Source of the DNA: Octopus bimaculoides
Taxonomy: Eukaryota
Direction: 5' to 3'
Length of the DNA: 64,000 bases
Assembly: GCF_001194135.2 (NCBI RefSeq)
Contig: NC_068989.1
Span: forward strand, 714,057 to 778,056
Below are positions 3,936 through 48,200 of the stretch, in pieces. Position 1 is the stretch's first letter; each line of letters opens with the position of its first letter. Both the position numbers and the translations under genes were made by a program. The notes under the pieces were generated by a model, which was not told the DNA's origin, made no database searches, and saw nothing but the letters and a program-made list of their open reading frames with translations.

Positions 3936-6900
3936 GTAGACTGTTGTTGATTTATGCAAATGTGTGTGTATGTGTTTATTGTAGGATTGTTTGTAAAAAA
4001 ATAAGAAAAAGGATCAGCCCTTTGCTGAAGGCCTCTCTGTATTGTATCATGTTGTTACCTTTCTTCCAAGTAGTTTGTTTATGTACAATCATTTCAAGGT
4101 TATGTCCTGTTTTTCAAGGTCAATCTTTTATTTATGAGATAATTCTATCTGAATTCTAATATTTCTTTAAACATAAATGTATTTATTATTGGTTACTTTA
4201 GGTAAAAAAATTGAATCACTTTGTCTCTCTTGAAATGAAATAATTTTAATAAGGTACACTATTGAATTTATGTGTATATCTATAGTTAACGGCTACCAGC
4301 ATATTTCAAGAAAAGACTGTTTTTAATTAGATTAAAAATAACTTTTATAGAAGTGTTTGAAAATTTCAAAGGAATTAAATTCTGTTTTCATGGTTTTTCT
4401 CCTCAATAACACAAAAAACAAAAAGGACAAATTATTGTATACTATAAGGATAGTTTTTTTTAATAAAAATGTTACTTTATAGATAATGCATTTTAAGATT
4501 TCTAAATAATTTATTTAAAATGTATGTCTATGTACACTGCAGCCGCTAGTTGCATGTCTTTTTTTGTCTTGTGAACATTAATTCAAATCAAGTTTTAGTC
4601 AAGACTATCTATTAAAAGTTTGATTTTTAAAAAATATTATTCATCTGTGGATTGACTGAATGCCAGTGCCCCAGCATGGCTCTGACCTTTGGGGCTGGAA
4701 ATACATATAGGCATAAAGGAATGTATAGGTAAAAAGCATTAATCTACATTTCAAATCATAAATTGACCAGTATATCTTTTGATCTATCCGAAACCTATTC
4801 TTTATTTAGGTCAGTGATTCTCAAACTAGTTTTTACCTATGGACCCCTTTTGATTCCTGTTTTACTGAAATGGACCCTCACAGCCATTTGATGTTTCAAA
4901 AAAAATCCTCTTATATTTTTATGATTAAATATTATTAGCAATTGTGTTTAAAAAAATGAAAATATTTTGAGTTTTGTAAAAGCTGAGCCAATTTATTGCA
5001 CTTAAATTTGAACAAAATCTTGTTTGGACCTCAAGGATCATATGGATCCTGGCTGAGAACCATTTCTTTAGATAATTTTCCGTTTTAATTGATTTTCAAC
5101 TTTACCTTGTTTGAACCTTGTGGTACTGCAGTGTTTAATCTTCACTTTCTTTTCTTCTCGGTGTTAATTCTTTTGGGAATAATTTCTATTTTTACTAGGT
5201 TGCCCACTCAGTTCAATTAATAATGGAAATATTCAAGAGTTCGGAGGGGGTTTAATAAACTATCTCTAATTTTATGTCGGAATGTATTATTGGCTTTGAT
5301 TTACTAAAATTTCATGCTAACCTTCCTGTTATGATAACATCTTGATAAGAGATTTTGAATTTAAATATAAACATTTTTTTAGCAGGAGGAGGAGGAGTCT
5401 TGGGTGGGTTGGTATTAAAGAGGTTAATCTTGGTTATGCTTGCTCTGTTCAGCTGGGTCAGCTGTTGACCTATCAGCAACCAATGAACTTGTTGCATTTT
5501 ATAGGATGTTTAATATAAATAACTATCAACTTGCTCACCTGACAAAAATTTTGTCTAACCAGTTTTTTTTTTCTTTCTTCTTGCTTTTCTTTTCAACCAT
5601 GTCTCTAAAATAATGTCTCCTCTCTATTACAGTTAATTAACTTCACTCTTTTTCTTAATTACCACCCCCACCTTTTCTCTGGACACCAGTAAATCTCTTG
5701 TTACTTCTTTCCTTCATTAGATCTTCTGCATTCCCTTTTCTCATTCTGTTTCTCCCTCTTCTCCCTACACTGCTCTGTCTTTGGTCCTTTTTTAAGTGTT
5801 TTTCACTTTCCTATTAAGTTAATCTTACATCCATTAGATAATCCTTCTATATTAATCCCTTTCCTCTCTCTCTCTCTCTCTCTCTCTCGTTATTTAGGTC
5901 TTTTCTACCTTCCATTGTGATGGTTTCTTTCCTCTCTCCCCCTTTCAACGTTTTTTTCCCACCCCTTTCCTTATAAACTCTCATCCTACTTCAAGCTCTC
6001 CTGCCTTTTTCACCTTCCTTAAGTCTAAACTCACTTTCTCTTCCCTTACCATAACGCCTCCCCTTTTCATCTTCCTTTGATTTTCCGCTTCCCCCTACTT
6101 TAAATCTTGTGTATTTTTTACTAGGTTTATTCCTTTTTGTTATTTTTTACACCCATGGTGTCCACTTTCCCCCTTATATATATATCTTACTAGCAGAAAT
6201 ACCCGGCGTTGCCCGGGTTAAAGAGAATAATGAAATCTAAAAATGCCGTCTAGACTACGCATCATCTTTATATATAGAGATGTATATACACACACGCACC
6301 CAAACACACGTATATATATGTATATCAATATAAATATATGAAAGTCAATGAAGTTTCGTAAAAGAAGGTGATCATGTACACACTTTCTTGCTGTTGTGAT
6401 TATAACACCTCGTTGTAAACAATGTTCCTTGTTTTCCCTTGTGGAGCATATACAAATAGGTTTTTTTTGCTGCCCACTCTTGAGCAGCCAACATACAGTT
6501 GTCCATGTGAGAAGCNNNNNNNNNNNNNNNNNNNNNNNNNNNNNNNNNNNNNNNNNNNNNNNNNNNNNNNNNNNNNNNNNNNNNNNNNNNNNNNNNNNNN
6601 NNNNNNNNNNNNNNNNNNNNNNNNNNNNNNNNNNNNNNNNNNNNNNNNNNNNNNNNNNNNNNNNNNNNNNNNNNNNNNNNNNNNNNNNNNNNNNNNNNNN
6701 NNNNNNNNNNNNNNNNNNNNNNNNNNNNNNNNNNNNNNNNNNNNNNNNNNNNNNNNNNNNNNNNNNNNNNNNNNNNNNNNNNNNNNNNNNNNNNNNNNNN
6801 NNNNNNNNNNNNNNNNNNNNNNNNNNNNNNNNNNNNNNNNNNNNNNNNNNNNNNNNNNNNNNNNNNNNNNNNNNNNNNNNNNNNNNNNNNNNNNNNNNNN

Positions 6901-9900
6901 NNNNNNNNNNNNNNNNNNNNNNNNNNNNNNNNNNNNNNNNNNNNNNNNNNNNNNNNNNNNNNNNNNNNNNNNNNNNNNNNNNNNNNNNNNNNNNNNNNNN
7001 NNNNNNNNNNNNNNNNNNNNNNNNNNNNNNNNNNNNNNNNNNNNNNNNNNNNNNNNNNNNNNNNNNNNNNNNNNNNNNNNNNNNNNNNNNNNNNNNNNNN
7101 NNNNNNNNNNNNNNNNNNNNNNNNNNNNNNNNNNNNNNNTCATTACAGTATCGAAATGGTGTACATATACATGTATATGTATACATATACATTTCTCTCT
7201 CTCTTTCTGTCTCTCTCTTTCTTTCTTTCTCTTTCTGTGAAAGTATCTGTCATTACAGTATCGAAATGTGATTGTTTCAGTTAGTGGAATAGTTTCATTT
7301 TTAAAGTGAAAGTATTTGACATGAGTGTTTTTGTTTCACTTTTGACACGTAATACTTAAATAGTGGAGATATTATGTTGCCGTGTGCTTGAACTCTGCAA
7401 GAAGTTAAAAAATTTTTTTGACTAAAACACAACTGGAACCCTAAGTAAGGCATGTGTAAAATTTGAATGAAATTGGTTGCGTAGTTCTCGAGTTTTAGGG
7501 ATTCACACAGACAGACAGACACACACATTCTCATTTTTATATATATAGATAACTTCTTGGATCTGGAGAAAAGGACAGTAGCCATGACTTTTACAGACAC
7601 CCTTCCCCACTAGATTAGTGGTGTGGCTGCCATTAATGTTCACCTTGAACCTTTCTAAGTCGATGTTAAATGGCATTAATAATAATATTGCAGACAGTTA
7701 CAGCTTTTCCCCAAATTACCTCTACTCTCCTCTTTTCTGTTCTTTCACTTAAAAAATATTCTATATCTGTATTGCGTATATAAGTGTGTGTATATACTCT
7801 TCTGTAACAGTCGGTATACAGGTATGTGCCTCTGTGTGTGTGTGCCTGTATGCCTTTCAGTGAGGGTGCATGTGTGTGTGTACTTGTAAATGAGAGAGTA
7901 TCATGTATAAGGGCATATGTCTGTGTGTATTTGTAGATGTATTCTTTTCTGGTACGACTAAGGGTTTATAAGTGTATGCAATCCTCTTTACTGGCCAGTT
8001 AATTCACTCATTGTAATTTCAGAGTACTCTACCAGTACTTTGTACTTAGATAGTTTTCTAGGTACTTGCTTTCTTTTGTTTGCTCTACTTGGTTTTTCCT
8101 TCTTTATTTAAACTTCATCTTTTTCTTTTGCCCTACTCTTTCTATCCCCCCACCCCTATTTCCAATTCTAACTCTCTACCTCACCCCCCCCCACTATTCC
8201 TTCACCACCTTTTCTTCTTCCCATTCTTCTGGTTTTTTTTCTTTCAACTTTAATTTCTTCATCATTTACCTGTCCACAGACCAACTTCAATTTCTCTCTC
8301 TTATAACAAATAAACGTATTGAACCCTTTCAAGAATTTCCTTAAATGTTGCCAAAGCCAAAGTGCTGTGGGAAGAAGAGCTATCCGCTTTTAAACAACTG
8401 CCTCTTCATGGGAAAGGAAAGAAATGTTTCATGTGAAAACTAAGAGAGAATATATTGAGACAGGATCAGGAGAAATGGGTTGGACAGGAAGTGGATATAG
8501 GCAGTGTATTAGAGAAAACGAAAAGGAATTAAGTCTGTTTCTTTGTCCTGTAGCTAGAGATTAGTAAATGCAGGCAAAAAAAATTGTGTAAATGGGGGAA
8601 ACTAATTGGCACTGGCATTGGGCATGGTTGATGCCAGTGGCGGCTGACTGGTCCTGTGCTGCTGACACATGAAAAGCACCATTTGAGTGTGGTCATTGCC
8701 AGTGCCACCTGACTGGCTCCTGTGCTGGTGGCACGTAAAAAGCACCATTCAAGCATGGTTGATGCCTGTACTGAATGACTGACCCTAATGCTGGCGGCAC
8801 GTAAAAGCACCTACTACACTCTCAGAGTGGTTGGCATTAGGAAGGGTANNNNNNNNNNACGTAAAAGCACCTACTACACTCTCAGAGTGGTTGGCATTAG
8901 GAAGGGTATCCAGCTGTAGAAACTTTGCCAGATCAGATTGGAGCCTGGTGCAGCCTTCTGGCTCGCCAGTCCTCAGTCAAACCGTCCAACCCATGCCAGC
9001 ATGGAAAGTGGGCATTAAACGATGATGATGATATATTGATTATGAAAGAAGGTGGCTGATAGAACTAGAACCTTTTGTAGTATTTAATTACTTTGTTTTG
9101 AGCTGAAATTCTGTAAGGATTAACTTTTCCATTCATTTGTTCAGAGATTGATAAAATAGATACCAGTCATGTTCTGGGGTTGAATTAATCAACTACAATT
9201 GACCTATTTGACCTGAAAATGTTCATCAGGTCATGGTGTTGAAATTTGATTTTTTTCACTAATTTCATTATTTCTGTTTATCATTTCAGAAACTGGTCGT
9301 TAAACCTGACCAACTGATTAAGAGACGTGGGAAGCTTGGCTTGATTAAAGCTGGTGTTGATTTGAATGGGGCGAAAGCATGGCTGTCAGAAAAGATTAAC
9401 CAAGAAATTGAGGTAGGTACATCTCCATTTTGAATTTTTGTATCAATAGACATCTTGATAATATTTCATTTGCTTTAGTTTGCTCAGTTGAAGGTAGGCA
9501 GCATTTACCTGATGGATTAGCAGAGGAAGATTCAAAGACCTGTTATAAGGAATATTAGAGCTCTAGTGCCATGGAAGTTTTAAAAATAATAAAATCACAA
9601 AATTGCAACATTTTGGGAAGGAAACAATCAACATGATTAAAGCCAAAAAAGATTATTGGAGTTGAGAGTTAAGATTTAGAATCATAGACTGGTAATTCAC
9701 TTAAAATGACATTAAAATGATGATGGGCTTCCATTCAGTTTCTGTCTGCCAATTCCCTTCAAAGGGCATTGATTGGTCAAAAGCGATATTAGAAGAGACT
9801 TGCCCTAAGTGATAAGCAATGTGATATAACCTGAAATGACACACACACACACTCCCCCCCCCCCTATATATGGTGCTGGAACCATGTAAAAGACACTGCT

Positions 9901-16024: not shown

Positions 16025-19000
16025 TACATGTTTATTGACTTAAGCAATGCGTAATGTCCTATTTCATTAGAAACAGCCATCTTGACTGAAGTTGGTGCTC
16101 AACTTACAGATTGCTTTCTCAGATAGTGTTATATGGACTTCATCTTTTATTTATTGCTATTTGTTGTGTAGTTGTTTGTTGTCTTTTATGAAACTTAAAT
16201 CTCATTGAACATGGTTGCCGGTTTAACTCTAAACACATTCTGCTTTCTCAGTTTAATTACTTCATTTTTGATTAGAACTTCTCCATGTTTTGGGATTCTG
16301 ATATTCGATAACTTTCATAAAATTAACTTATACAAATAATTCCAGCTAAGAAATATTTACTTATATACATGTTGGGTGTGAAATTATGATGTATAATACG
16401 TTTTCCATGAATAATGAGGCTATTTATTGTCTAAGCGTGAAGTTAGTTTGTGAAATCGAATAACCTTGTGTATCAGTTTACAGGTTTGTGCCATTTAGCC
16501 TCAGACTTCATTGCAATATGACCTGTCAAGGATTTGGACCTCTTTGACACTACCAAGTGTTTGATGGCTATCTCTGAATTAGAGGTCTCTAAATAAATTG
16601 CGACTACTCAATATTAACAAGCATTGTTTATATATTCATGGCAGATTTTTAATTCAGAATTGTGATATAGTGGCAAGGAGTTTAGTTTTGAATGAGAGAT
16701 AGAAATGCAGAATAGAGTTTGCTTTTTCCTTTTGCTACTTTTTTCTGTATCAAGTGACACTGGTCCTATTGTTGAAGTCATTGGAGAAGGGATCAGGCTG
16801 TTACCAAATGGTGATTCCATGAAAATTTTCTTAAAATATGTTTTAAACAATATATTAACTTGTCTTTATTTTTCAGAATTACTCGATATATATTTAGGAT
16901 TTAATTTAATATTTTATTTTAAAGGCTGAAGAATATTATGTGTGCATTTACTCCCAACGCTATGAGAATGTTATCCTATTTCATCATGAAGGTGGTATCG
17001 ATATTGGAGATGTTGATGCTAAGGTAAATGTTCTTTATTGTCAATTATAGTTTGTCACAGTAATGTATCTGTTCGTTACATTTCTGTCCTCTTTCACTGT
17101 AATTCATTGCAATTCTACTATTCTTTGTGAGATGCATATCTTCCTCCCTTATCTCGAACTCACCTCTACTCCTTTGATTAGGTTCTAGTTTCATTCTAAA
17201 AAGTGGAGTTTACACACAAACACAAGCTAGTACTTAAACATCAATGACAAAGCCTTCCACTTTGGTTCTATTTAAATAGATGGGAGATGTTTTCACATTT
17301 GCTCAAACTACTCCAAGCATCAGCAGTTGTTTCATTACCTCTCATCTTGCTTTGAGTGTATTTGTCTCAGTTTACTTTTCTCTGAAGTCATCATCACCAA
17401 AGACCTCAGTGAACACAGAGATGCATTTGGCACTTTCACATCCTGTACCAACATGACTGGTGCATCAGTTCCTTCAACTATTTCTCACTTCTCAACCCAA
17501 CCACTCCATTTTCTTTCTCTAATCCTCTCATCCCTCTCTTACTTTTGAGGCTGAAGATGTTGAATGAGGAGAATGAATGGAATGGTAACCTAGAGGTCAT
17601 CCAGTTGTAGGAGTAGGAGAGGAGGAGGAAGTTGGAGAAGTGGTAAGAGTAATGAAGGGTGGAATTGCAAGAGTTGTGGGAGGATTATGATGGAAGTTGA
17701 AATGTGAAGAAAAGGACAAAGATTTGTAGGGTGTTGGTGAAAGAGGATGCTATTCCTCTCTTCAGATTGGATGGCAAGGATGGCAGTCCCCTGGGTTATG
17801 GCTCGTTTAGAGTAATTAATATATTGGAGCATCAAAATGAAGTTAATGGAAAAGGATAGAACAGAAAGTAATATCAAAGAAATGCAGTTTGGATTTTATG
17901 TCTGGAAGGACAAGAGAGAAAATGAAGAAATTGTTTTGGGGGTCTGTTGATATAGAGAAAGACTTTGGTAAGGTTTCTAGCGAAATGGTGTGTATTGGGA
18001 GAGTTAGCAATGAAGGCCGAGTTGCAAAGGTTGCTCTTTGTTTCTTAAAACCACACCCTCCTCTCTTCAATATTGTGGCATTTACAAGAAATTACTTTAA
18101 AAAAGAAAAGACCTGAAATTTGTGTACACCATTAATGACACTTGTTTTCATTTCAAAATGTTTTGATAAACTCCAGGAAACATTTTATTATATAACTAGG
18201 CAAGACGACTGGAGATGGCCCCTGCCGATCCTATCAAGGCAGACATGGTTGCATCACTACTTGTTCGTGTTCCTGCAGATCTCAAAGAGTAAGTATGGAA
18301 GGATGATTTTCTTTGTAAGAAAATAAAATTGATAATATTGTTTAGATTGACTGACTCCCTTATTATAACCATACCAGAATTTAAGGGTTACTGATAGAGT
18401 TAATGGAGGATACTGGAAGCCTGCAAATCACAAATTGTTTTAGAATTTATGTAGCTATTTTTATCGTGTGTGTGTGTGTGTGTGTGTAAAGCATGCAGAG
18501 TGAAGCCACTTGGTACATATTGACTGTGAACTCTGCTCTGCATGTGCACCATGTTTTAACGTTGTAGCTCACTTCTGCTGTTTACAGCAGTGCTTGGAAG
18601 GAAGGTGTGTAGCGTGTGATCATCGCATTATGCATAACAGAGGAAGTTGAGTAGAGAATTTGCATCAAATTTTGCCAAAAGCTTGGTGATACCTGCTCAG
18701 AGGCCTACATAAAGTTTTCAAAAAGTTCTCATTGTTCTTGACACAATCAAGGAGATCTTGTGCGACTGAAATCCGAGTGTCTTTTTAGTTAGCTAAATGT
18801 AGTTTTGGCACAAACTTGGCAGACACACGTCTCGTACCCAAATCTTCAGTGATAATGGACTGAACTGAACCGTAACTAATCTGCACCTCCTCTGATAACT
18901 CATGGATGGTGATCTGATGATTTCCCCTCACAGCTGCACACACATCTGCAATGTTTTTTCCCCAGTTCTGCTGGTTTCGGGTCTCCCAGAATGTTTGTCA

Positions 19001-22000
19001 ATATCAACATTTTTGCAGCCATCTTGGAAATGTCTGAACCACTCGTACACTTGTGTGCATCTCATACATTCCTCTTCATACACTTTCTGAACAGTTATTG
19101 CCATGACAACTTTCTCTGTCATGGTCAATGTGATGATCACATGCTACACACCTTCCTTCCAAGCACTGCTGTAAACAGCAGAAGTGAGCTAGAATGTTAA
19201 AACTTAGTGCACATGCACAGCAAAGTCAATCTTTGCCAAGCAGCTTCACTCTGTGTACTTTAGCTTCGTTACTATGGCAACAATCTGGATACTTATTCAT
19301 CAAGCCTCATATGAGTGAGAGGGAGAGAGAGATCTACCTTCCCAGTATTTTAGAGTGCACAGTTTAATGGTGGGGCTGAGAGAAAGATTAAAGCAGCAAA
19401 AATAATTGTGAGTGATATTTATTTGAATGAAGTTCTTGTTAGCCTCTAAATTAGTTGGGATTATAATGAAATATTCTAATTAACTCTTAGAGAAACCAGA
19501 GTTATTTATTAGTTTGTTTCAATATAATTACTTTGTTTTTTGTAAATCTCATCTTGAGTGAAGTACTGTTGCTGTTGTCATATTTATTTGTTGATAAACT
19601 TTTCTAAAATTTCTATTCTCTCAGCATCCTCTCTCGTTTCATTTCTGCTCTGTATAACCAGTATCAGGATTTGCATTTCACTTACCTAGAAATCAACCCT
19701 TTGGGTAAGTCTTCTTTCTCTTAATTCTTAAGAGTGAAATCAGAGATTTTAGCAAATAAAAGACGAGACCAATTAGTTTCTGTTGTTGTTTAGCCCCAAG
19801 TCGATCTTGATCATTCAGGCCTAGTTTTTTTTTTTTATTTATTTATTCAGGATGACATTGCTCTACAAGTGCCTTTTGAATAAGGTAGGGTGTGATTTGA
19901 AAGGAACTTGACTATTATTTCTAGCAAGTCAAGTGACCATATAGAGGCTTCCTTATTGGCTGATATGCAGTCTTTTTGATTCAAATACAAAATCTCTGAC
20001 TTTGCTCTTCATTTTCTGGTGGTTCATTAAAATAAATACTATTGATAGCTGAGAATTGGTGGCGCTCAGACACCGTCATCACTGTCTTGAGGAATTTTTA
20101 GTCAAATGAATCGACTCCTTATGGCTGGTTCATAGGGTTACCCAGAGTTTTGTGTCCATAAAGCGCTCAGCTTTACGCACATCTTGTTAGACCCTAATGG
20201 CTGGTGGCCTATAAATTGCAGGGACAAAAGGCCTTGTGGCTAGTTTTCAAAGGTGAAGCACAATGGATTTCTCCCTTAGACCAGTATCCGGAATCCACCC
20301 GGTCAGCTTGCAGGTCCCAGGATTTCAGTAGGAATTGTCTGAAGTGTAAACAAGGTCCAAAGACTTCCGTCCTGGAGTTTAATATGCTCCCCAGGTTGAG
20401 GGAGTTTTTTAATACCCTTGCCTGTTTTGTTATGCACAGCTTGCAGCATTTGCTCTCATTGATGTAGGAACCTGGTTTTCTAGAATTTTCCATGTGATTT
20501 CAGGTGCCACACATGGCTGGCCAAGGACGTGGCATAACTTCTATCCAGATAGTGATCTATGGGAGACAGTCCCTTGCACTTGACCTTTCTTCTTTGTGTT
20601 TAAAAATTAGCCACGAAGCCTTTTCCCCCTTCCAATTTGAAGAGAGGTTATGGGCCACCGGCCATTAGGGTCTGATGATGTGTGTGTAAAGCTAAATACT
20701 TTATGGACACAAAGCCCTGGCTAATCCTATGAACCAGCCATAACTAACATTCTCTAAATACTCTACTGCTCTATAATTTAGAGTGTACTTTTCTTTCGAA
20801 TTTATGTTTTACTGACAATATATATATATATATATATGAAAATAAAGGCATCCATATAGTCTGCATCACAAGGTATTGATTCACCTGAGGCTGCAGTAAA
20901 AGACATTTCTCCAACAAAACAAAAAGTGAATGAAAGCTAAAATTATGTGACTGCCAAGTGAACTCTTCGACCATTCAGCCTGAATACCATAAAAACATGT
21001 ACGAATATTATTAAACAGAAATTATGAGCAAGGAGCCCGGATGACAGTATTTTCTATTACATTAAAAGTTATTTGTAATTATGAAATGCTGTGATGTATT
21101 TTCTCCTCATATATACTTCCTCAGTGATAAAGTTATGTTAATATTAGTATAGATTAATGAGATTTATAGTATAACACTCACCATAAGAAATACAAATGGT
21201 TCGTAGTCTGAAAATGTCTTCATCAAATGAAGTTTTTTTTATATTTTGTTTAGTTGTGACCAATGGCAAAGTTTTCATCCTTGACTTAGCTGCCAAGATT
21301 GATCAGTGTGCAGAATTTTTGTGTAAAGCAAAATGGGGTGATGTAATGGAATTTCCACCCCCTTTTGGCCGGGATGCTTTGCCAGAGGTAAGTTTTTTTT
21401 AAGTTTGGGAAACTCTGAAGTTCCTAGGGAGCTCTACATGGTGCCCACTTTCAATTTCCATTTTATTTCTTTTTTACTATTTCAATTCTTTTATTTCACT
21501 GGTTTTGACCCCAGTTTTTAGTCTAGTACTCATTTTATCTGATGACTATTCCCCGAGAGAATAACAAGGAATTTACACCAATTCACTCAAAAGTACACAT
21601 GCATGCGTTCACATGACAGGCTTTTGCACAGTTTCCATCAACCAAGTTTCAGCCACAAGTTTCCTTTCAAACCAAAACTAAAGTACAAGATATTGACTCA
21701 AGTTTCTGCTGAGTGGAACCAAATGTAGAATTATATAGTTGTGAGGTCAACTTATTAGCCATAGAACCATTGCTAAATTTGAGAACAGCAAAAATAGAAG
21801 ACAACCTGATTTCTCTATTCCCGAAATCCCTCTGAAACTTTGTGTAAATGTGAGGAGCAAGTATTTACTTTTGTGAACAGGTTTATGTTGTTGTACCTAT
21901 TGTACACAACTAAGTGAATTGTGGTATGTTGGATAGTGTTCAACTCAGTGGCTCAGCAAACTACTTGTTGTGGATACCATGGTTCATAACCAAAGAGTAA

Positions 22001-25000: not shown

Positions 25001-28000
25001 CTTTGAAAATTCTTGTGATTCTGGAAAGAATTTGCATTAAAAATGGGGTAAAATGACCAAGAAATGGTTCATTTAATCCTTAAATTCCACCAAATCAGTG
25101 ATTTAGTATAATCATTAATTTGTTCACTTATGATTTTTTAGTCTAAATTGCATTTCTTAATCTTGAATGCTACTTATAAAGTACTAATTTTGCAACCAAC
25201 TTTCGCACCTCATGTGACTAATTTTCTCCATTTTTAACAACATATTAAACTGAACTTTATTGTCTTGACTTTGTAGGGAATTGTACGAGCTCTAAGAGAA
25301 TATCAGCAGAGATTGATCGAACACAATGTCTCCATCTATGTTCGACGTGGTGGACCTAACTACCAGGAAGGGTTGCGTATCATGAAAGAACTTGGCAAGT
25401 TATAACTCTGTACTAGCTCTGTCTTTGAGATGTGTTTTGTGGCTGTATGATTAAGAGGTTCACTTCTCCATCGACCACGTAGCTTCAAGTTCAGTCCTAC
25501 TGAATGGCACCTGGGGCAAGTGACTTCTATGATAGCCTAAGCCTACCAATGCCTTGTGAGGGAAACTGAAAGAAGCTCGTCATGTGTAATATCATTGTCA
25601 TAATCATTTCAAGGATGATTGGAAACAAGGGATGCTTGCTTGAATGAGAGTGATGCTTATTTACAACAATTGTGCAGTATCATGTGTACTCAACACTGGC
25701 CCCCCTCCACTTTCACCAATGGTTTATAGTCATGAGACATAACTTCACTAAATCTACCATTGTATACATAAATACATTTTGTAAATTCTTTTATCTTTTA
25801 ATTTTATTCTTAAGTACAAAAACAAAATTGACTTATTTCTTTAAATTTGTATTATTTTTTTTACAATTCTTTTGTTTCCTTTTTTTTTTTCAAGGTTCCA
25901 CACTTGGGGTTCCGATCCATGTTTATGGTCCTGAAACTCATATGACTGCCATTGTTAGCATGGCACTTGGCAAGAAAGACATTCCAACCACTCCACAACC
26001 TGTGCAAACTACTGCTAACTTTTTACTTCCAGGAGGGACAGTGAGTTTGTCTTTGTTTTTAATGGTTACCAACTATTTTAGTTCTCTTTTCTGTATAGTT
26101 TCCTCAGAGGAGGAAGGACAGCATCCATGAGCCCATGTCAGAGACCTGGACTGCGCTAGTAGATCCTTATGAATTCTTTTCTGAGGTGCCTATAAAAAAA
26201 AGGTACCACGTGATTAAGAACTGTCAAAAGGGTACCATATACTAGATGAGTGTAAAATAGGTACCATATTATACAGAATGGTAAAATGCATACCATGTGA
26301 TAGAGGACTGTAAATAGATTATGTGTAATAGAGATCTGTGAAATATCATCATCATCATCATCTAATATCTGCTTCCCATGCTGGCATGGATTGAATGGTT
26401 TGCCATTGTCTGTGAAGTAGTTGGAAGGGCATCAGGCTGTAGAAACCATGCCAGAACAGAGTGTACTGGGTTCTTTTTATGTTACATGGCACCTGTGTGA
26501 GTCCCAGTTGAGAAAAATGTTTTGAGTAATTTAAAATATGACCATCTGGAATTGTAAGAAAGAACTGTATGGAGAATTAGAATTGATTCTGCATAGCCAT
26601 TACTTAATAGACGTGCAGTATATCATCATCATATGTCCGTTTTTCATGCTGGCATGGGTTGGACGGTTTGACAGGATCTGGCCTGGCTGCATGTCTGTCT
26701 TGGCATGGTTTCTATGGCTAGATGTCCTTCCTAACACCAACCACATTACAGAGTGGACCGGTGCTTTTTATGTGACACTGGCACGGGGCACTTTTACATG
26801 GCACCAGCACCCATGAGCCTGTAAGATTAGGATCACTCAGCTGAAGAAGTATGTAACTTGGAATGCCGAGTTAAAATCCTCCATAACTGTGGTAAAATAT
26901 TTCATTTTAAAAACAAAACAGCTCCAAAACATTTTAGATTTATTAAACAAACAAACTACTACTGCAATTAGATTGTGGGTGATTGAGAACAGCTATGTAA
27001 GCCATGTGTATTTTTATATACATTTTTTCATGTTTGTAAGTATTGTTCCAGACGAATGTATGTTCACAACTTGATTACTGAACCAGTTCCACCTATTAAC
27101 TTTCAAATTTGTTTTAAATGGTTTTATTCCAGCCTCTGATATTTCACTGCCATTATACAATCCCACATCAAACAAATACAAGTCCAACATTATTCTATAT
27201 TTCTCTTTTATTTTTGTATTTTCTATTTGTTTTCATTTTTCAATTAATTATATTTTTGTTTTTCCTTTCAGAACATGCAGGTAATCCTTGCAGCTCCGCC
27301 TTCTCCCCCTCCCCTTTCTTTCTCTATTGGACACAGTAGCAAGCATGATTCCATTGCAATTCTCTTCGTTTCTTTTAGCTTCTGTCTCTCCCATGTTTAT
27401 GCTACTCTGCACTTCTATATTCATGATTGTGTTAGTGGTGTTGATGTTGTGATAAGTATCCCTGGTTTCTCTTCTCCATGGAATATCGATTATACAGAGA
27501 CACTTGACCTGAAGTATTGCGTGCGCACACGTGTGTGTGTGTGTCAGTTGGTAAATGTTCTGACTATTCTAAACACATTAGCTTTGAAAATTAAATAAAA
27601 CTGCTTCAAAGTGGAATGGAAGTCGGTAGATCTGGCTAGCCAGATGCTTATTTTTGTTCTCTACCTCTGATTACCATTTTAAATGGAGCTGTTTGCAGTA
27701 CCTGGGTGTCTCATCATCATCATCATCATCATTCAACGTATGTCTTCCATGCTGGTATGGGTCGGATGATTTAAGAGGAGCTGGAAAGCCTGAGGACTGC
27801 ACCAAACACCACTGTCTGTTTTGGCATAGTTTTTACAGCTGGAATGCCTTTCCTAATGCCAACCACTTTACAGAGTGGACTGTGTGCTTTTTACATGTCA
27901 CCAAGTAACTTGCCAGATCCTTTGAGGGGCAGCCAATTTTTAGCTTATGTTAACTGACAGGTATTAGTAAAAAAACTTATGCAAGACTTCTACACTGCTT

Positions 28001-31000
28001 CTCTGTTCAAAATTCTATGGCTACATGAGGCATTGACCAAGCCAAGTGTATGAGAGCAGAAACTTGCTGAAATGTGAGGTTTGACCATTCCTGAACCTGA
28101 GACTGTTTGTGATAGCAAAATGAATTGCTTAACCTCCTCACAAAGTTGTCTAACCCCAAGTCAGCTCTGGTTGAACCAACCTATGATCAAAAGCATTCCA
28201 ATGGTGACCATTCCATCTTTGTCTTATCTGCATGGAACCCAAGACCACATTAGCCAGTGTGACATAGATGATAGTGTAATTTCTAGGTAGGTATGGCTAC
28301 TCTTTCTAGCAGCTTGACTGACCACATAGAGGGGAAAAAACGTGTTTGTATTTTCAATATGTTTTGACCATCTTTTCCTTAAAAAATGTTGATATTAATT
28401 CATTATGAAATCTGTTAACAAGAACTGGTTTGAACGCTATTAAAACATTTTGCAATTGGTTAAATACTTCATATTTTAGTGCCAAATGGCACAGAAGTCT
28501 TTAGCAATAGATGTCTTTATTAACATATGACTGGCCAAAGGTCTTTCAGCAAACGATGTCTTGTAGTTGCCAGTGATAAGTTATTTCTCTCCAGTAATCT
28601 AGATCTGTCACTTGAGGTTACAGTAATAAATGATTTCTCTGACATTTAATGTAAATTATTTGTCACTTTGAATTTACCTGCCATTGAATACCTAACAGCT
28701 GAGGATCAAGGAATAATCTGTGATTGTTTTTATTGTAATTTCTTATATTTTTTAATGAATGAATTTTCACAAAAGCGTTACAACTAGTCACTTAATGAAG
28801 TAATTACAGCCCATGAAATGAAGGATCTGCAATTTGTATCTTGTAACCAGCTTTGTGCTATATTCCTGGTTCAAAGCAAGTCTAGTTCATCTGACCAAAT
28901 ATAAAGATGATACAATTCCCTGTTGAAATCAAAGAGTAGGAGGAACACCATAGTTGAGGAATGTTGCATTATTTTGTACTGTGAGCTCAAACTCCAACAA
29001 ACTGGTTTGCTATCCAGGAGGATATGACTTATCTGTTCAATTGCAAAGATTAGTATAATCTCTCTCTCAGTAATAGCAGGTGATAAACTAGGATGCTGAT
29101 TATTATTAAGATTAGTGTATTCATGAGTTTTATAATTGTGCTAAGATTATAGTATGAATTAATCTTGAGTTAGCATTTTTTTTTTTTTGTGGCTAATAAC
29201 CTTTGACTAGATTCGGAGCTTGGTTCTCTTTTTTTCCCCATCAACCTTTTAATGCTTTGTTGTCCCAGCATCATGATGCATGTGTAACCTGAATGAACTG
29301 AAGAGTGATATTAACCATTTTATTCCTTCGTTCCCTTATTATTTTCTTTGGAACAAGAGAATAGAAAACTTAAAATTAAAGAAACCAATGTTTTTATTTT
29401 CCCCCCTCAGGGTGGAGGGAGACAGTCAAGGAAATTAATTTGCTGGCTAAATTATAGAATTAATTTTAATTCCACTTGATTTTGAACTAAGATTCTTATG
29501 GGTTGATTATAAATACCTTTCACACAAACATTTACTGTGTATTTAGCAAGAAATTTAATTTTTGTTATTGCCTGGGTGTGGTTAAGAACTTGGTTTCCCA
29601 ACCATGAGACCTTCAGTTCAATCCTGCTACACAACATCTTGAAATTCTTCTACTATAGCCATCAATTGACTAATGGTTTGTGAATGAAATTGGTTGATGG
29701 AAACTGTGTTGAAGCCTATTGTTTGTCTTTACATTAACATCTTTTGAGAAAAGATGGGTCTGTAACTTGGCAATACAATTAAGAGATTGCTAAAGAAAAA
29801 AAGTCCCAGGTTTCAAAATAAGTACGGGGGTGGTGGTGATAGAATTAATTAGTAATTAATAGGTATTTGTTAATCAATGTGGGTGTTATTGACTTCAGAA
29901 GAGGAAGAAATAGAGATTATACCATTCCTATATTTCCCAGCAAAGTAAATGGAAGTTGCCACTGGGAATCAGAATCCAGTTCTGTATTCAGCTCAAGAAT
30001 TTTATACTTTCCAAAGGCCACTTCTATAGAAATCTCAAGCAACATGCATTTCCCCATTTTTCATTATTATACAAAATTATTTTGGAGATTCTAACAACTG
30101 CTTGCACATTTAGTTACTTATATTTAGCTTCCATGTTTGATTATTTCTAATTTTTCTTGTGTTATTTTCTGTTTTGCTTGATATTCATTTTGTGTGTTAA
30201 TTGTTCAATCAATCTTCAATAAGTAGATTTTAAATTGTATACTAATTAACACCTCCCACCCCTGGGTTTTGTTTGTGCCTTTTGATGTTTTTGTTTTGCT
30301 TTTGTTTAAACAAGAGCAATGTTTTTTGCTAAATTTTTGTTGTCAGCATGCATACAAATTTTATATTGTGAACATTTTTTTTTATTCCTAACAAAAGTCT
30401 GTGTACATTGAATGTTTAAGTAAATCATCATCATCAAAACTTTATATACTTATTAATTACTAAATTATTTTAGGCCACTAACCTCTTAGGAACGCATTTA
30501 GTATTTGCACTCATTGACAAATTGATGTGCATAACAGTGCATAAGATTTTATTAGTTTTGCACTTTTATTACATTATTTCACAACAATGTGACCCAATTA
30601 TCATCATCATCATCATCGTTTAACGTCCGCTTTCCATGCTAGCATGGGTTGGACGATTTGACTGAGGACTGGTGGACCAGATAGCTACACCAGGCTCCAA
30701 TCTGATCTGGCAGTTTCTACAGGTTTTTTAAAATCTCTTATCATAGACACAGATTTATATTACGCTTGGTTAATAGAAATATAGAAAAAGTAATGGAGAA
30801 AAGCGCATTCTAATTGTATTCTATAAATATTGGATAACATACCTTGAGGTTTTGAATGCTTCTTCATCCTTTTCTTGTACACTTTTTATCAAGGGTTGCT
30901 TTGGCCAATCTTATGGAAGTGCAGCCTGTTTAACTACTGAGGCAATGCAATAACTACATTCACATAGATCATCATCATCATTATCATCAATGATTAATGT

Positions 31001-32004
31001 CTCTTTCCTATGCTGGCATGTGTTGGACGGTTCGACAAGAGCTGAAGAGCTGCCCAGGCTCCATGTCTGTTTTTGCATGGTTATTATGTGCTCTTGCACA
31101 ACACCAGCACTCATGACCTGCATGATTAGGGTTGCTCAGCTGAAGAGAGATGCAAGGACCACCATGATTTCATGATTTCACTTAGCTTGATGTGTCTTTC
31201 TCAATAAACAGTCAACCACCAGAAGTCTTGCTCCCTTGTCATCCTCTCTGCGAGGCTCAGCGTCTGACAGTTCCTTATTAGACAAATGGTTTTTGTAACT
31301 GATACACTTTCTGTTACTACAGGATTGGGAGCTGCTGGTCAGCTGGGCAGAGTAATGAATCTGGGTCAGAAGTATCAAATTGTTGGATAAGGTGATGAAA
31401 GTCATGGAGAGGGTCATGGCCCAAATAATTGGGGAGAGTTAGCTGAGATGAAATGCAGTTTGGTTTTGTGCCAGGGAGAAGCACCACTGATGCTATATAT
31501 CTGGTAAGGCTGTTGCAGGAGAAATACTTGGCTTTTGTTGACATGGAGGAATCCTTTGACAGGGTCCCCCAATCCCTTATCTGGTGGTCAATGTGGAAAT
31601 TAGGGATAGACGAGTGGTTGGTGAGAGCTGTACAAGCTATGTACAGGGATGCTGTCAGTAAGGTGAGGCTTGGCAATGAGTACAGCGATGAATTGATTTC
31701 CCTCAAGCCAACTGAAATCCTAGTCATGGCTGATACTGGTGTCATGCAAACGGCACCCATGCTAGCAGCAGGCAAAAGCACCTGTCACACCCTTGAAGTG
31801 ACTGGCGTTAGGTGGTGCATCCAGCTCTAGAAGCTATGACAAATCGGACTGAAGTCTGGTGCAGCCCCTCAGCTTGCCAGCTCTAGTCAAACAGTCTAAC
31901 CCATGACAGCATGGACAAATGAACATTAAATGATGATGATGATTATATAGATATGGTGCTCCAGCATGGCCAGAGCCTTTAGGCAGTAACATAAAAATAA
32001 ATAA

Positions 32005-32035
<31 letters not shown>

Positions 32036-35000
32036 TTCATGCCCTATTCAGTTGTTTAGCTTTGCTTTTCAATGAATTGTTTGTTTTACTAACCATACAG
32101 TTACATAATTAATTACCGTACATTTTAATTAAGATATGTTATAAATTTTTGAAATACGGGTTTTGTGTGTGTGTTTTCTTTGGGCTTAAGCTTTTTGTTT
32201 TTAATCCTACATTATTTCAAATTTCTTTTCTTGGTAAATTAGAATTGGATTTACTTAAATTGTTAAATAATTTCTCTATTTCAAATGTGCTGCTTTTTTG
32301 TAAAGAAACTATAAACCAATTTCTGTTGTACCCTTATAGAATATATTGATTCTCACAAACTTGTTGCTTTTGTATCGAAAGTTCATTTTTTTGTTTTGTT
32401 TACCAAAGTTTTTAAAGCTGTGACATTTATAAGACTATTCATAGAAATAATTAAATAAATATTTTTTAAAAAATAGTTTAAAAAATTACTTTCAAATACA
32501 TTAAGTAATTTGTAAATGGATTTGTTTGCTTTATTAGAATCTTGCAAAAAATATTTATATGGAAATGTTTGAATAGAAACTGAAAAAACAAAAAAACTAG
32601 TTTGTGTTCCTGAGAAATAGTTTGAATCGAGGATATTTTCATTCAAGGCACGATTAATTACCAGACAAAAGAGCTGTTCTTGCAACTTGTTTCATAGGAT
32701 GTGTTTTCTGGGTTTTATTTGGTTTTTTTCCATAGTTCTTTTCATATTCTTGTAGCTATTGTGTTCTTGACTCTAAGATTTTCTTAGATTTTAATTCTGC
32801 ACCATAATACCATAGTAACACAACCCACACTACAGGAAAATAGATTACATGACTAAAATGGTTCCTTAAGACAAGAATATCTGATGAACCTTATCAATAC
32901 AGCTATCTACAAGACCCAAAACATTCCAGTGACAACACTGAGAAAAACAAACCAAAATAATAAAAAGGACAAAAATCCCAAAATCCCAAATCTTCAGATC
33001 TGTTTGACAACAAATGCGAGAAAGTTCTCCAAAAAAGTTAACAAGAAAAGAATTTTTTTTTAAAAATTCTCCACACCAAAGTTAAGAAAGAACTTACTAG
33101 ATCTATGAACTAAAATTTATATTATCAAAAAATAAACTAAACTGATTAGAACTACCAGTGAAGTCATTCTTTTCCTTTTTTCAAATATATACATATATAT
33201 ACATATATACACACACACACAGCACCCCTTTACTATTGTAAACTGATACTGTTATTTAACAGATGATCAGCTTGGAAGTACACCAATGATTTCTTTTTGT
33301 TTCTATTAACAGAGTACATTCTGTCAAGCTCAGCTTGGTGTAAGTCAATTTTGTATTTTCTTTCCTTTGCATGATGTAATGACTCTTAGTTGAACTACTA
33401 ATGTTTTTGGTTTGAATCTGGTAGCCTCCAATTAAGCACTGTCTTGTCTCGAAAAGTCTCTGTATTTTGTGTGAAAACCTTCAATCCTTGGCCACTTGAT
33501 GTTGTTGCTTTTTGTTCCTATGTCTGTTGTTTCCAGGTAAGTAGTTTTGTTTGTGGTGGTTCATGTTATGAATAAAAAAACTCCCCTTACACAACAGTGA
33601 TTAAAGAAAGGACTTTCAATCTAGTTCCTGTGTTAAACACACAACACTTTGTAGTGTGTGTCTCCGTCCTTCACTTGTAAACAAACAGCAGCGTAGTTTG
33701 GCTGTTCCCCTCCATCCAAGCACTTTTGACTCCCTTGCCTCTCCTCCACCTCCTCTCATCACCCATGCTTGTGTGTCCAAGTCCCGAGCCTGCACTAACC
33801 TCCATCACCAATCCTTCCTCCTTCCACAGAATCTCAATTGTCTTTCATTTCTTTGTTGCACTTGCTTTTCCTGCAGCCATCGACTTACAGGTGTTTCAAC
33901 AGAATGCCAATGGCATCCGTCTTCTTCTTATTGTTGTTGTTGTTGGAGGGGCTGGGAAGAGGCTGGGCTCAGCTTCTTACTCAAAATAATAATAATAGTA
34001 AAAAGAGAAAAAAAAAACCCCAGACAATTATGGATGCCCCAATCATAATAGTCTCTTTCTGCATGTATATATTTGTGTTTCATATGTATGTGTTTGTGCT
34101 TCTATGAGTATTTGTGTGTGTGTGTGTGTGTGTGTATACATGAAAATAACCCAAAAGTCCACCTGACCTTTTTCTGGAAAACATTTAAATGCTGTGTTGT
34201 GGGACTCTCTCTATATTCACTTTAGATGACTCTGGACATACACATAGGATAGATACAATGTGCAATAATAGAAGACTCTTGCCAAAATGGTGCCATGTAT
34301 CAGGGTGGGACCTAAACCATATGGTTGTTGTATAATGAACTTGTTGATCAGCCATATATAAAACTGGAAATATTGATATCAGTTCTGGACGAACAGATTA
34401 TTTCCAAGGATGAATTATGGAAACATTGAGTTTTACTTAGGAGAAAAATCTTATGTATTTTCTGAAAGCATCAAAAAACTTAAGATCTCTAAGTGGGTGG
34501 CCATGAGAAGGAAGTGGTGATCCTTTTGCCTTTTTTAAGGTCATTTCAATTGAAATTGAGTAACAAATGTTTCAATTTTATGTTGAAATTAAAAACTTTC
34601 ACCACAATTACTTGAATAACTACTTTCAAGTGGAATCTATCAAATGTCATTCTTTCAATTGTTGTTGGACTTTTAGATGCTGTTTTCTTCATTACAGGTT
34701 TGTATTGTGACATAGGCTTCCAAGGAATGTTTGTTTTTATATAATGTGTTTGTGTGGGTGTAGTTTTTATTTGCACTCTGCTTCAGTTTGTATAGTTATA
34801 TGCACACACACAGCTCTCTAGTTGCAATTCATTTTTGCCAACAATGCCATATCGTTTTCCAATCACTGCTTGAATACTGATTATACCTCAGGTTGAACAT
34901 TTAAAATGTATTCTGTTGGTTCCCCAGGTTACAGATAATAGACCATGATTAGTAACTTAGTAACATTGTAATCAGAGATATTTGTAGCACATAAAAGATT

Positions 35001-36236
35001 ATTTACTTTTAATTTCTTGAAGTATGAAATAAATTAATTTGTATTATTCAACCGTTTGTACTATTCTTATTCTCAGGAACTTTAAATTTAACTTTTATCT
35101 TTAGATTCCATGGATTTTTCACTGAAATCAATGAACAAGACATTGGCCCGACTGCATTTGTTGATTCTTGTGTAATCTTACCTGAATTTCCTCCTCAAGT
35201 TCTGCATTCATTAATAGGTATTTTATTTTCTACCTTCTCTTCAGCGTTCACCAATATTGAAGCGAAAATCATCAGGTGATCTAAGCGCCAATTCCAGCAA
35301 TTCCAAGATTGCTCACCATGACATGGCCAATGATGTAGAAACAAAGCAGCAGCATGGTCTCTTCTCCAAACAGACCAAAGCTATTGTATATGGAATGCAG
35401 CAACGGGCTGTACAAGGGATGCTGGACTTTGACTATGTCTGCTCCAGAGATGAGCCTTCAGTTGTTGCTATGATGTACCCCTTTACGTAATTATCTTTTT
35501 TTCAATTCAATTTTTCTTTGTTATTAAGAGTAAGGAAGGTGGTGGGCGAACAGAATCCCAGAATCCTTAGTGGCATTTCTTCTGACTTTATGTTCAGGAA
35601 TTCAAATTCCTGCAAAGTCAGTTTTGTGTTCCATCCTTTCAGGGTCATAAATAAGATAAGAACCAGTCAATCACTGGGGGTTGATGGAAGTGGCTAAACC
35701 CCTTCTGCCAAAAGTTCAGGCCTTCTGTCTATTGTAGAAAGAACAAGTAATGGGATTGCCATCTAATATTTTGTTATAGCCTTTCCTTCTTTCCATCATA
35801 TTCTTGTTCCTTGCACCTTCCCATCCATTCTGGCACTTCTAATATCATTTCTCTCTCTTTTGGTCCCCCCCTCTCAAAAATTTCTCGCTTTGCTGTCATC
35901 ATTGTCCCCTCTCAATGCCCACCTTGGTCTACAAGCTTTGACTACTGACCACTCTTGACACATACCCTGTCCTAGGCGCTTCTCCCACCTACTCTTCCCA
36001 CTGTGAACGGTTTGGTTGAAGAAACAGAGAGTGCTGTGTGGTTGTGGAGTCCCTCTTGTCCCGTTTCTAGTATTGCTACCATGAGAAAATTATCCCAGTA
36101 TATTTTGTAAAGTGGTTGGCAATAGGAAAGGCATGTAACCATAGAAACTAGACCAAATAATATGTACCAGCACCAGTTTATCAGGCTGATCCAACCTGTG
36201 CCAACATGGAAACTGGTTATAAAATGAGAATATGAA

Positions 36237-45200: not shown

Positions 45201-48200
45201 TGCCTTTGTCAGGAATCAATAAAATAAAAATATTAGTCAAATGGTATTGATTATCTCCACATCTCTCAAATTGATGGCTTTGTGCCTAAATTAGATACAA
45301 TTATTATTGTTATTATTATTATTAAACAAATTTCATTCTGTTTAAAGTATTTCCTATCATTGAATTCCAGTCGACCCACGACTCTCTTTTTCTCCCTCTC
45401 TCCTTCCTCTCTTTCCTCACTCTTCTCCCTCTCTACTTATTCTTTCTTTCACTAATACATGAAAGGTTTTTCTTTCTATTATTCAACTTCCAAGACTTCC
45501 AAAATATGCCACCAAATTCATCGAGATGTGCCTGATGGTGACGGCTGACCACGGACCGGCTGTTTCTGGAGCACACAATGCTATTGTCTGTACACGGGCA
45601 GGCAAAGACTTGGTCTCAGCTCTAGCTTCTGGACTCCTTACTATTGTAAGTATATTCTTACAGTCACACATCATCATCATCATCATCATCAACAACACCA
45701 TCACTCTCGTTATTCTCATCATCATCTTACATTTATCTTTCATTTGTAATTTTTTTTACCCTTTTTCCATTTTATATCTTCCACTTCCTCTAATTTAACA
45801 TCTTTGATATTATTACCTCCATCCATTTCACTAGAAACGAATTCTGACCCATGTTTTGCTTCTTGTGGCAGGGTGATCGCTTTGGTGGGGCACTAGATGC
45901 AGCTGCCAAGCAGTTCAGTGAGGCCTACGACAGTAGCATGATTCCAATGGAGTTTGTTAACTCTATGAGGAAAAAGGGGAAACTTATCATGGGCATTGGA
46001 CACCGTGTGAAATCCGTGAGTAGTCTTGAGTTTTAGTTACATTCATGTGTACATATATTTCGAAATTCTTTACACACACACACACACACACACATGTATA
46101 TAACACAATATAATTATCAGGATACACTCTCGTTTACTGAGATTACATCAGAGGTGTGTAATTCAATCCTCATGTGCATAAACAACATGCAATTATCTTG
46201 CATCAAAATACAAATCAGAACATTTTCTGTTATTGATTGAAGATTGATGAAGGTAGCTTGTGAATATGGTGAGTGAATTACACAACTTTGGTGCAATCTC
46301 ACAAAATGGTACATAGTCTATCTTGGCAATTGCATTATGTTATAATAATTCAACCAAGCTGGCATTGTGTGCTACCATTTATATATATATATATATATGA
46401 AAATACAGAGTGACTCTTAGAGACTGTCGTATTCCTGGGAAATTCATCAGGGAATCTCATCCGTTGCCTGGTTTGGAGTGGTGGAACTAGGCATGAACAA
46501 TCGCAGATCTTCCATGGGGTGGGGGTGGGGGGGAATGGCTTTGTCCAAACCTGCANNNNNNNNNNACTAGGCATGAACAATCGCAGATCTTCCATGGGGT
46601 GGGGGTGGGGGGGAATGGCTTTGTCCAAACCTGCATCTTAAAGAAGTTTCCAGGTGCAGATTTATCATCTCACAACACCTACAAAAGCTGTTCATCTCAT
46701 TGAAATATTTACTAAATTCACGAATACGACGTCTCTGTTTAAATCTTTTCAGTTGAACAACCCTGACATGCGTGTAGTGATCTTAAAAGATTATGTGAAG
46801 CAACACTTCCCTGCAACTCCTCTGCTTGATTACGCATGCGAAGTGGAGAAAATAACCACCTCGAAGGTAAGTTGGATTCTGGATCAAAAGAGATATGCTG
46901 TAGTATAAGGTTTAACTGAGGTCTGGATCAAAAACTTAGGTAATATAAGGATTAACTAAGACTATCCAGGCAGTGAGTAGACAAAATCTCCCAAGGTGTT
47001 TAAAATCCAAGAACAAGCAGGGCAGATAACTTATCAAAATTTTTGAAAAAGACTCTGCAGATTAAAATCGATTTGGTTGTTTGAGAGGTAAGAAGTAAAA
47101 ATCACAAATTTGTTTCAGTTGTATTAAATCTCCTTGGTGAAGTATATTCTTCTCAGCTGGTGATACAAAGTGATTAATATTACATGTATAAATAGAGAGA
47201 GAGAGAGAGAGAGAGTGGGGTGTGTAGTGACACTGATTATGAATATCTACAATCCAGTTTGTATGAATATCTACAATCCAGTTTGTGAGGCAAGTTTCCG
47301 AGATGAATGTCCATTTTCCATGCTGGCATGGGTTGGACGGTTCAACTGGGGGTCTGGGAAGCCAGGAGGCTGCACCAGGCTCCAGTCTGATCTGGCAGTG
47401 TTTCTACAGCTGGATACCCTTCCTAACGCCAACCACTCCGTGAGTGTAGTGGGTGCTTTTTACGTGCCACCGGCACAGGGACCAGAGGAGGCTGGCAATG
47501 GCCACGATTAGTTGGTGCTTTTCATGTGCCACCAGCGCGGAAGCCAGTCAAGGCGACACTGGCATCAGCCACATTCGGATGGTTCTTTTTACGTGCCACC
47601 GGCACGGGGATCACAACTACAATCTCCATTTGATTTTCATTTTGATGTTGATGTACTTGACTCAATAGGTCTCCTCAAGCACAGCAGGTTGCCCTACGAT
47701 CCAAGGTAGTTTTGAATGGGCTGGGGCTGGTTATGTGAAACTGATGTAGGATACAGCCATGAATTCACTTTATTTGCCGGGTCTTCGCAGTCACAGCATA
47801 TCTCCAGAGGTCTCGGTCTTTCGTCATTGTTTCTGCATAACTTTCTACTATTCAAGATGTTAGGAAATTGGAATTGTTTTCTCTCATGTGAGTTCTTTGT
47901 TTTATAAAGATGAGAGGAACATAATTGGTTGGAGTTCTATTCTAATTCTCACATAAAGTGTTATTGTTATGATGATGATGATTGTTCTAGTATTTTCCTT
48001 CAGGGAAATAAATGTTGTTTCTATTTTGATTTCAGAAACCTAACCTAATTTTAAATGTCGACGGCTTCATTGGTGTTGCAATGGTTGATCTTTTCCGGAA
48101 TTGTGGATGTTTCACACGGTGAGTTAACTGTGTGTGTGTGTGTGTGTGTGTGAACATGGGAATAGCAGTTGTCTTCATATGAACATTAGATTCTGCTGAC

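Follow-up and report, generated by a model that had tools for sequence, protein, structure and literature searches.

We analysed a 64,000-nucleotide (nt) stretch of the Octopus bimaculoides genome (the window; contig NC_068989.1 of assembly GCF_001194135.2, forward-strand positions 714,057 to 778,056), which carries an ACLY gene whose longest intron contains a candidate micro-exon of only 9 nt. A preliminary description, made from the sequence alone, had proposed this element as a tissue-specific, possibly neural, micro-exon in the linker that joins the citrate-binding and CoA-binding halves of the protein. Positions are those of the window, and a slash marks a splice junction.

The ACLY gene and its longest intron

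The gene was located by tblastn with a human ACLY sequence, used only as a probe, and its junctions were refined by hand. In the rebuilt model, ACLY lies on the + strand and has 29 coding exons, running from an ATG at 3786 to a stop codon near 51180 as an uninterrupted open reading frame (ORF) of 1090 amino acids. The spliced ORF matched the Pfam families Citrate_synth_N, Citrate_bind, CoA_binding, Ligase_CoA and Citrate_synt, each above its cut-off; the fused ACLY architecture (ATP-grasp, citrate-binding, CoA-binding, CoA-ligase and citrate-synthase-like) is complete in one ORF. The linker region of the rebuilt protein matched human ACLY chains in the PDB (E=4e-69). The complete architecture and the structure match confirmed the assignment of the gene to ACLY made in the preliminary description. 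The features around the candidate are as follows:

25895-26040, + strand: ACLY coding exon 12 of the gene model, with a phase-0 end at the donor ACA/GTGAGT
26041-35244, + strand: intron 12, 9204 nt, phase 0, the longest of the gene
27183-27269, + strand: 87-nt tract, rich in T and free of AG (56 T, 12 C, 16 A, 3 G), with the polypyrimidine tract tatatttttgtttttcctttc inside
27272-27280, + strand: candidate micro-exon AACATGCAG, AAC ATG CAG (Asn-Met-Gln), 9 nt, phase 0-0, no stop codon
27281-27286, + strand: donor of the candidate, GTAATC (CAG/GTAATC), non-consensus at +5 and +6
27343-27347, + strand: GCATG (aGCATGa) at +63 relative to the exon end, possibly an intronic element of the Rbfox type
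35245-35486, + strand: ACLY coding exon 13 of the gene model, running up to MMYPFT

The end of exon 12 at 26040 and the start of exon 13 at 35245 agreed with the junctions previously proposed, as did the position in the linker: the insertion would fall between Citrate_bind (residues 241-417) and CoA_binding (residues 482-587). The exon-13 segment RSP...RKSS aligned to human STP...RTAS, and the segment at the GGT/ junction lay opposite human GST STPAPSRTAS. We take the human STP...RTAS segment to hold the Thr447/Ser451/Ser455 phospho-cluster. The phase-0 boundary after ...ANFLLPxxx was also present in five contigs of other animals described below (L001, L004, L086, L089 and L094).

Two further observations concern the gene model. 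Intron 11 looks like a GC-AG intron, with the donor TTG/GCAAGT at 25395 (+ strand), the sole junction that keeps ...RIMKELG/STLGVPIH... in frame. Runs of N (assembly gaps) were present at 2922-2931, 6516-7139, 8849-8858, 46556-46565, 51045-51054 and 55345-55948; four of them lie within ACLY introns and none in intron 12.

Anatomy and rarity of the 9-nt candidate

The sequence at the candidate reads ...tatatttttgtttttcctttcag/AACATGCAG/gtaatccttgcag. The last AG upstream of the T-rich tract is at 27181-27182, and the tract runs into tttcag, whose AG (27270-27271) is the predicted acceptor; the AG-free length, earlier put at about 88 nt, was measured as 87 nt. The aacatgcag followed by a cag/gtaatc donor was present exactly where it had been reported, and the GCATG noted at about 60 nt downstream was indeed seen, at +63. 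Exon 12 of the rebuilt 29-exon gene ends in phase 0, as the claim of a phase 0-0 exon requires, and since the host intron is in phase 0 and the 9 nt contain no stop codon, inclusion would keep the reading frame. The candidate is no longer than 27 nt, is a multiple of three, is stop-free and is compatible with the phase of its intron; in these respects it looks like a true micro-exon that keeps the frame, in line with the original proposal. Exon 12 ends in ...GGAGGGACA and exon 13 starts with CGTTCACC..., so that the skipped form corresponds to GGAGGGACACGTTCACC and the form including the 9 nt to GGAGGGACAAACATGCAGCGTTCACC (...GGAGGGACA AACATGCAG CGTTCACC...).

Two other origins of the element were rejected. 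Self-BLAST of positions 26900-27650 against the window returned no other copy, and transposon-like fragments flank the site without covering it, so derivation from a repeat or transposon was discarded. A structured intronic RNA was discarded as well, because Rfam gave no match anywhere in the window at the gathering threshold. Intron 12 does contain transposon debris, at 31453-31830 (+ strand) and also at 26358-26816, 27654-27908 and 30911-31123; it includes a reverse-transcriptase fragment (RVT_1, E=8e-5, below the Pfam cut-off) and several copies of a short repeat, the spurious ORFs of which share ...LFWH.FYS.N.F.N.NH.TEWT... together with Ser/Asp runs.

Splice-site strength was measured with log-odds matrices (donor, -3 to +6; acceptor, -23 to +3) built from the gene's own 28 introns against intron composition. 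The canonical AG and GT sites of the candidate were as strong as those of real exons. Its acceptor scored 11.5 bits, a value exceeded by 5 of the 28 real acceptors under leave-one-out scoring; its donor, at 6.4 bits, matched the median for the real donors, and the same GTAATC hexamer is used at real exon 19. Among the 213 in-frame, stop-free AG..GT pairs of 3-30 nt in intron 12, the candidate (18.0) was surpassed only by a 27-nt pair at 33313-33339 (18.9), and the third pair reached 10.1. These two also ranked second and first, respectively, among the 4380 AG..GT pairs of 1-30 nt in the 44 kb of sense introns, the antisense maximum being 15.6. With 7 acceptors and 56 donors this good in the 44 kb, chance would yield about 0.02 in-frame pairs of this quality in intron 12 and about 0.09 across the introns as a whole. 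Of 400 dinucleotide-shuffled versions of intron 12, 9 contained at least one such pair (mean 0.0225).

One alternative is that the candidate is a chance pseudo-exon, in which a T-rich intron has placed a good acceptor-like site 9 nt upstream of a middling donor-like site, and neither is used by the spliceosome. The sense introns are T-rich, and AG-free gaps of at least 87 nt are not rare in the 44 kb (25 of 2349, three of which fall in intron 12); such gaps precede 6 of the gene's 28 real acceptors. The density of GCATG in the introns, 1.13 per kb, gives a chance of about 0.07 of finding one within 63 nt. Taken individually, the AG-free tract and the GCATG are therefore weak features. The whole-gene expectation of about 0.09 is itself not negligible, because the best case was picked from 64 kb. 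Against chance stand the two high-scoring pairs in a single intron where 0.02 were expected, and the recurrence in other animals described in the next section. Overall, we consider it unlikely that pure chance accounts for the copy in the window.

The higher-scoring pair in intron 12 is a second small candidate exon:

33313-33339, + strand: candidate exon of 27 nt, phase 0-0, encoding STFCQAQLG

Its acceptor is ...tttctattaacag (ctattaacag), its donor is GGT/GTAAGT, and TGCATG lies at +29 to +34. It was the top AG..GT pair across all introns of the gene. Forms containing it would be recognised by the strings GGAGGGACAAGTACATTC (exon 12 followed by the 27 nt) and AACATGCAGAGTACATTC (9 nt followed by 27 nt, with the junction ...AACATGCAG AGTACATTC...). 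Elsewhere in the gene, the strongest decoy acceptor was tttttttttttatttatttattcag in intron 6 (16.1 bits), followed 34 nt on by AAG/gtaggg (8.0 bits). The resulting 34-nt exon (19851-19884, + strand) would shift the frame and holds TGA and TAA triplets; it may be a poison exon or a product of chance.

Recurrence in orthologous introns

Relatives were sought as contigs carrying the exon-12 ORFs of other animals. No exact match to the exon-12 or exon-13 ORFs was found in the searched public assemblies, and the closest exon-12 relatives in the searched collections had 79-85% protein identity. All the contigs used share the phase-0 intron after ...ANFLLPxxx, and the same matrices were applied to them; in L081-84 and L085, the visible part of the intron was too short. 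In L085, the exon at 18729-18926 is partly tandem-duplicated at 18946-19083, and the second copy has an in-frame stop, either as a pseudo-exon or as an assembly artefact. At least four other animal lineages (five further contig sets) carried a high-scoring 9-nt in-frame candidate in the corresponding intron:

L086, 1283-1291: CGATCAAAG (RSK), donor AAG/gtaatg, score 22.0, the runner-up in the intron scoring 12.3
L004, 1539-1547: GCTGCCCAG (AAQ), donor CAG/gtaatt, score 17.1, top of the intron, with TGCATG (tGCATGt) at +62
L089, 1478-1486: GTAGTTCAG (VVQ), donor CAG/gtaaaa, score 15.5, top of the intron
L095/96/97 (L095, 3571-3579): GTAGTTCAG (VVQ), donor CAG/gtaaaa, score 15.6, top of the introns, related to L089
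L094, 11925-11933: GCTGTCCAG (AVQ), donor CAG/gtaaaa, score 13.3, third in the scan

The preliminary description had named the absence of conservation in related species as the result that would refute it; instead, in-frame candidates of the same length with strong splice sites recur. All of them are 9 nt long, lie in the 5' part of the intron and have a donor with A at +3 and +4 and a base other than G at +5, and the exon ends in CAG in four of the five lineages. The long AG-free zone and the GCATG are not common to the lineages. Second candidates, differing in length, were observed downstream of the 9-nt exon in L004 (30 nt), L086 (27 nt), L094 (21 nt) and L095 (15 nt).

The introns of L004 and L094 were unalignable except for a 15-nt island, AGGCTGYCCAGGTAA, which consists of the micro-exon and its splice sites; 8 of the 9 exon positions are identical there. 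The introns of L089 and L095 were 82% identical, and their exons were identical at 9 of 9 positions. In a 372 kb control (sense sequence outside intron 12 and all antisense sequence) we found three 9-nt candidates scoring at least 13, two of which lay on real exon boundaries, compared to six in 39 kb of intron-12 sequence (Poisson P of at least five, 2e-5). At a stricter cut-off (total of at least 17, both sites at least 6, 3-30 nt), 168 kb of sequence on both strands gave five hits: three of the 9-nt intron-12 candidates, the 27-nt candidate of the window and an artefact at a real acceptor. Two results argue against a chance pseudo-exon: four other lineages have a candidate of precisely this length in the orthologous intron (P of about 2e-5), and the exons of L004 and L094 agree at 8 of 9 positions inside otherwise unalignable introns.

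Recurrence also bears on whether the site might serve for recursive splicing, that is, for subdividing the 9.2-kb intron so that it is removed stepwise, with no trace in the mature mRNA. This is the longest intron of the gene, and a strong acceptor with a donor close behind is what such a site would look like. However, a recursive splice site or RS-exon has to start with GURAGU, the candidate begins with AACAUG, and the resulting junction ACA/AACAUG regenerates no 5' splice site. Moreover, the counterparts lie in short introns (2.3 kb in L086) or close to exon 12 (about 250 nt downstream in L089), where stepwise removal is needless, and the strict 9-nt, stop-free and in-frame property across lineages would be left unexplained. 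We rejected this explanation as highly improbable.

A different question is whether the exon, if real, is constitutive: always included, giving a protein of 1093 amino acids or longer, with only the skipped gene model being wrong. The scores of both sites fall among those of the gene's constitutive splice sites, a real exon of the same gene has the same donor hexamer, and there was no convincing tissue-specific enhancer, the upstream UGC being absent and the GCATG not conserved in most lineages. By contrast, the donor +5 base is not G in any of the five lineages carrying the candidate, while it is G in 21 of the 28 real donors of the window, non-G occurring in 25% of them; a base other than G at this position is typical of regulated exons. 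In addition, L001, L087 and L088 have a complete intron 12 with no candidate, which indicates that the protein works without these residues, and 9-nt exons are seldom recognised unaided. Constitutive inclusion is conceivable, but we think it rather improbable.

Interpretation and comparison with known systems

Judging by its anatomy, its rarity and its recurrence, the sequence at 27272-27280 is likely to be a genuine exon that at least some ACLY mRNAs contain. Most economically, the micro-exon is read as older than the divergence of the lineages carrying it, and selection seems to have acted on its existence, its length and the strength of its splice sites rather than on the tripeptide, which would fit a spacer function in a disordered linker.

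Several results weigh against this interpretation. The tripeptide varies (NMQ, AAQ, AVQ, VVQ, RSK), and a search for AG-AAYATGCAR-GT in all fetched loci gave no match, so that the exon sequence is not conserved outside the window. A good 9-nt candidate was absent from several relatives with intron 12 visible in full (L001, L087, L088, L030/31 and L033); L001 has a complete intron of 417 nt without a candidate, though its exon 12 is the closest (82%). Both the unconserved peptide and these absences also speak for a pseudo-exon. No flanking motif common to the lineages was found: comparison of the window with L004 and L086 gave only low-complexity T-rich words, and when the window and L004 were aligned pairwise, CAGGTAAT was the only stretch they shared. 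The matrices rest on 28 sites of one gene and were then used on other species, and the score thresholds were picked after inspection of the data. Searches of protein collections with the exon 12-exon 13 peptide and an exon-12 profile yielded genomic exon ORFs and remote (at most 52%) transcripts of insects, vertebrates and protists, but no ACLY derived from a transcript of this clade. Finally, an exon of 9 nt normally needs dedicated enhancers, being rarely recognised unaided, and no such enhancer was identified with confidence.

If the 9 nt are indeed an exon, it would be defined by a strong 3' splice site and by a donor with good exonic pairing (CAG/GUAA) and mismatches at +5 and +6; the long AG-free, U-rich tract suggests a distant branch point. 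The consistently suboptimal +5 base, together with the absence of the exon in some relatives, suggests a regulated cassette rather than constitutive inclusion, although we hold this with less certainty than the existence of the exon. Splicing of exon 12 to the micro-exon and on to exon 13 would insert Asn-Met-Gln after ...LLPGGT and before the exon-13 peptide, in the disordered linker and directly N-terminal to Ser-Pro and basic-Ser-Ser motifs (a putative phospho-cluster). With similar caution, the three additional residues might alter the access of kinases or partner proteins to the adjacent sites. Ordinary gene models would skip an exon of this size.

A fuller picture may be drawn, which as a whole is decidedly speculative: an ancient micro-exon of several invertebrate lineages, keeping its length, its position and its weak +5 base but not its peptide, would act as a regulated three-residue spacer altering kinase or partner access to the Ser-Pro/Arg-Lys-Ser-Ser cluster. 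With the 27-nt exon it could yield up to four linker isoforms, as a convergent counterpart of the splicing of vertebrate ACLY exon 14 (see below), perhaps under the control of Rbfox in excitable tissues.

ACLY supplies the cytosolic acetyl-CoA used in lipid synthesis and in the acetylation of proteins, and the enzyme is phosphorylated within its disordered linker. If the interpretation is true, a second and independently evolved small linker exon lies beside phospho-motifs across distant invertebrates; this would suggest tuning of linker length as a general mode of ACLY regulation, and the gene would offer a new system for testing it. Automated models of this gene are likely to carry an error or omission of 3 (or 9, or 12) amino acids. 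The approach itself, in which in-frame AG..GT pairs ranked by position weight matrices are compared across orthologous introns, allows micro-exons to be discovered without RNA data.

The candidate would belong to the frame-preserving micro-exons of disordered regulatory regions, and alternative splicing within the ACLY linker is already known in mammals (PMC11260853). In human and mouse, ACLY exon 14 (30 nt, 10 amino acids) distinguishes a long from a short isoform under the regulation of ESRP1 (Supplee et al., J Biol Chem 2024, PMC11260853). It lies in the disordered linker and carries or adjoins phosphorylated residues, and no functional difference between the isoforms was found (PMC11260853). 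The candidate resembles exon 14 (PMC11260853) in being a small frame-preserving exon of the same gene family in the same linker between the citrate-binding and CoA-binding regions. It differs in its length (9 vs. 30 nt) and in that its inclusion is predicted, whereas that of exon 14 was demonstrated experimentally. Moreover, exon 14 sits toward the C-terminus of the vertebrate linker and adjoins the exon beginning ...KSTTLFSRHTK (ORFs P0034 and P0047); the vertebrate linker is split just before ...TTLFSRHTK in these ORFs, while the intron of the candidate follows directly after ...ANFLLPGGT. As both intron position and length differ, we rejected orthology with exon 14, which is best seen as an analogue. 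Exon 14 is under ESRP1, and for the candidate we found no evidence of ESRP regulation.

The neural micro-exons of bilaterians that depend on SRRM3/4 (eMIC-domain) proteins are defined by a UGC just upstream of the 3' splice site. The candidate shares with them a length within 3-27 nt, a preserved frame, a strong polypyrimidine tract, a long AG-free zone and a location in a disordered region beside regulatory sites. The defining UGC, however, is lacking: the 100 nt preceding 27272 contain no TGC, and neither do the proximal tracts in L004 and L086, which leaves the candidate without the SRRM3/4 signature. Nor does it have a conserved peptide, as most conserved neural micro-exons do. With the UGC absent and a GCATG at a similar distance only in L004, the suggestion of a possibly neural exon found no support, and we regard the neural reading as weak.

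Rbfox-enhanced cassette exons carry a downstream intronic (U)GCAUG, and the candidate could be a neural or muscle-specific cassette switched on by Rbfox at such a site. The nearly equal distances of GCAUG in the window (+63) and of UGCAUG in L004 (+62) favour this, as do the UGCAUG at about +30 after the 27-nt candidate and the low density of GCATG in the introns. However, the motif in the window is only the pentamer (aGCAUGa rather than UGCAUG). L086, L089, L094 and L095-97, four of the five other contig sets, have not conserved the motif and show no GCATG in the first 120 nt downstream, and an SRRM3/4-type mechanism would lack its upstream UGC. We consider an Rbfox-driven cassette an unlikely explanation.

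A search of the literature returned nothing on an ACLY micro-exon or on cephalopod micro-exons. Another parallel came from insect-like loci in termite-gut metagenomes, which carry a 30-nt in-frame exon, LSKGDGE[PS]S[MP], with the donor gtaaat, about 125 nt after exon 12:

L015, 1063-1092: 30-nt insect-like exon
L017, 1916-1945: 30-nt insect-like exon
L021, 2230-2259: 30-nt insect-like exon
L022, 440-469: 30-nt insect-like exon
L023, 4597-4626: 30-nt insect-like exon
L034, 252-281: 30-nt insect-like exon

This exon shares with the candidate the intron after ...ANFLLPGG and the frame, but it is longer, lies much nearer to exon 12 and has a conserved peptide; the insect linker probably contains it constitutively. 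Its conservation indicates that small linker exons in this intron are widespread.

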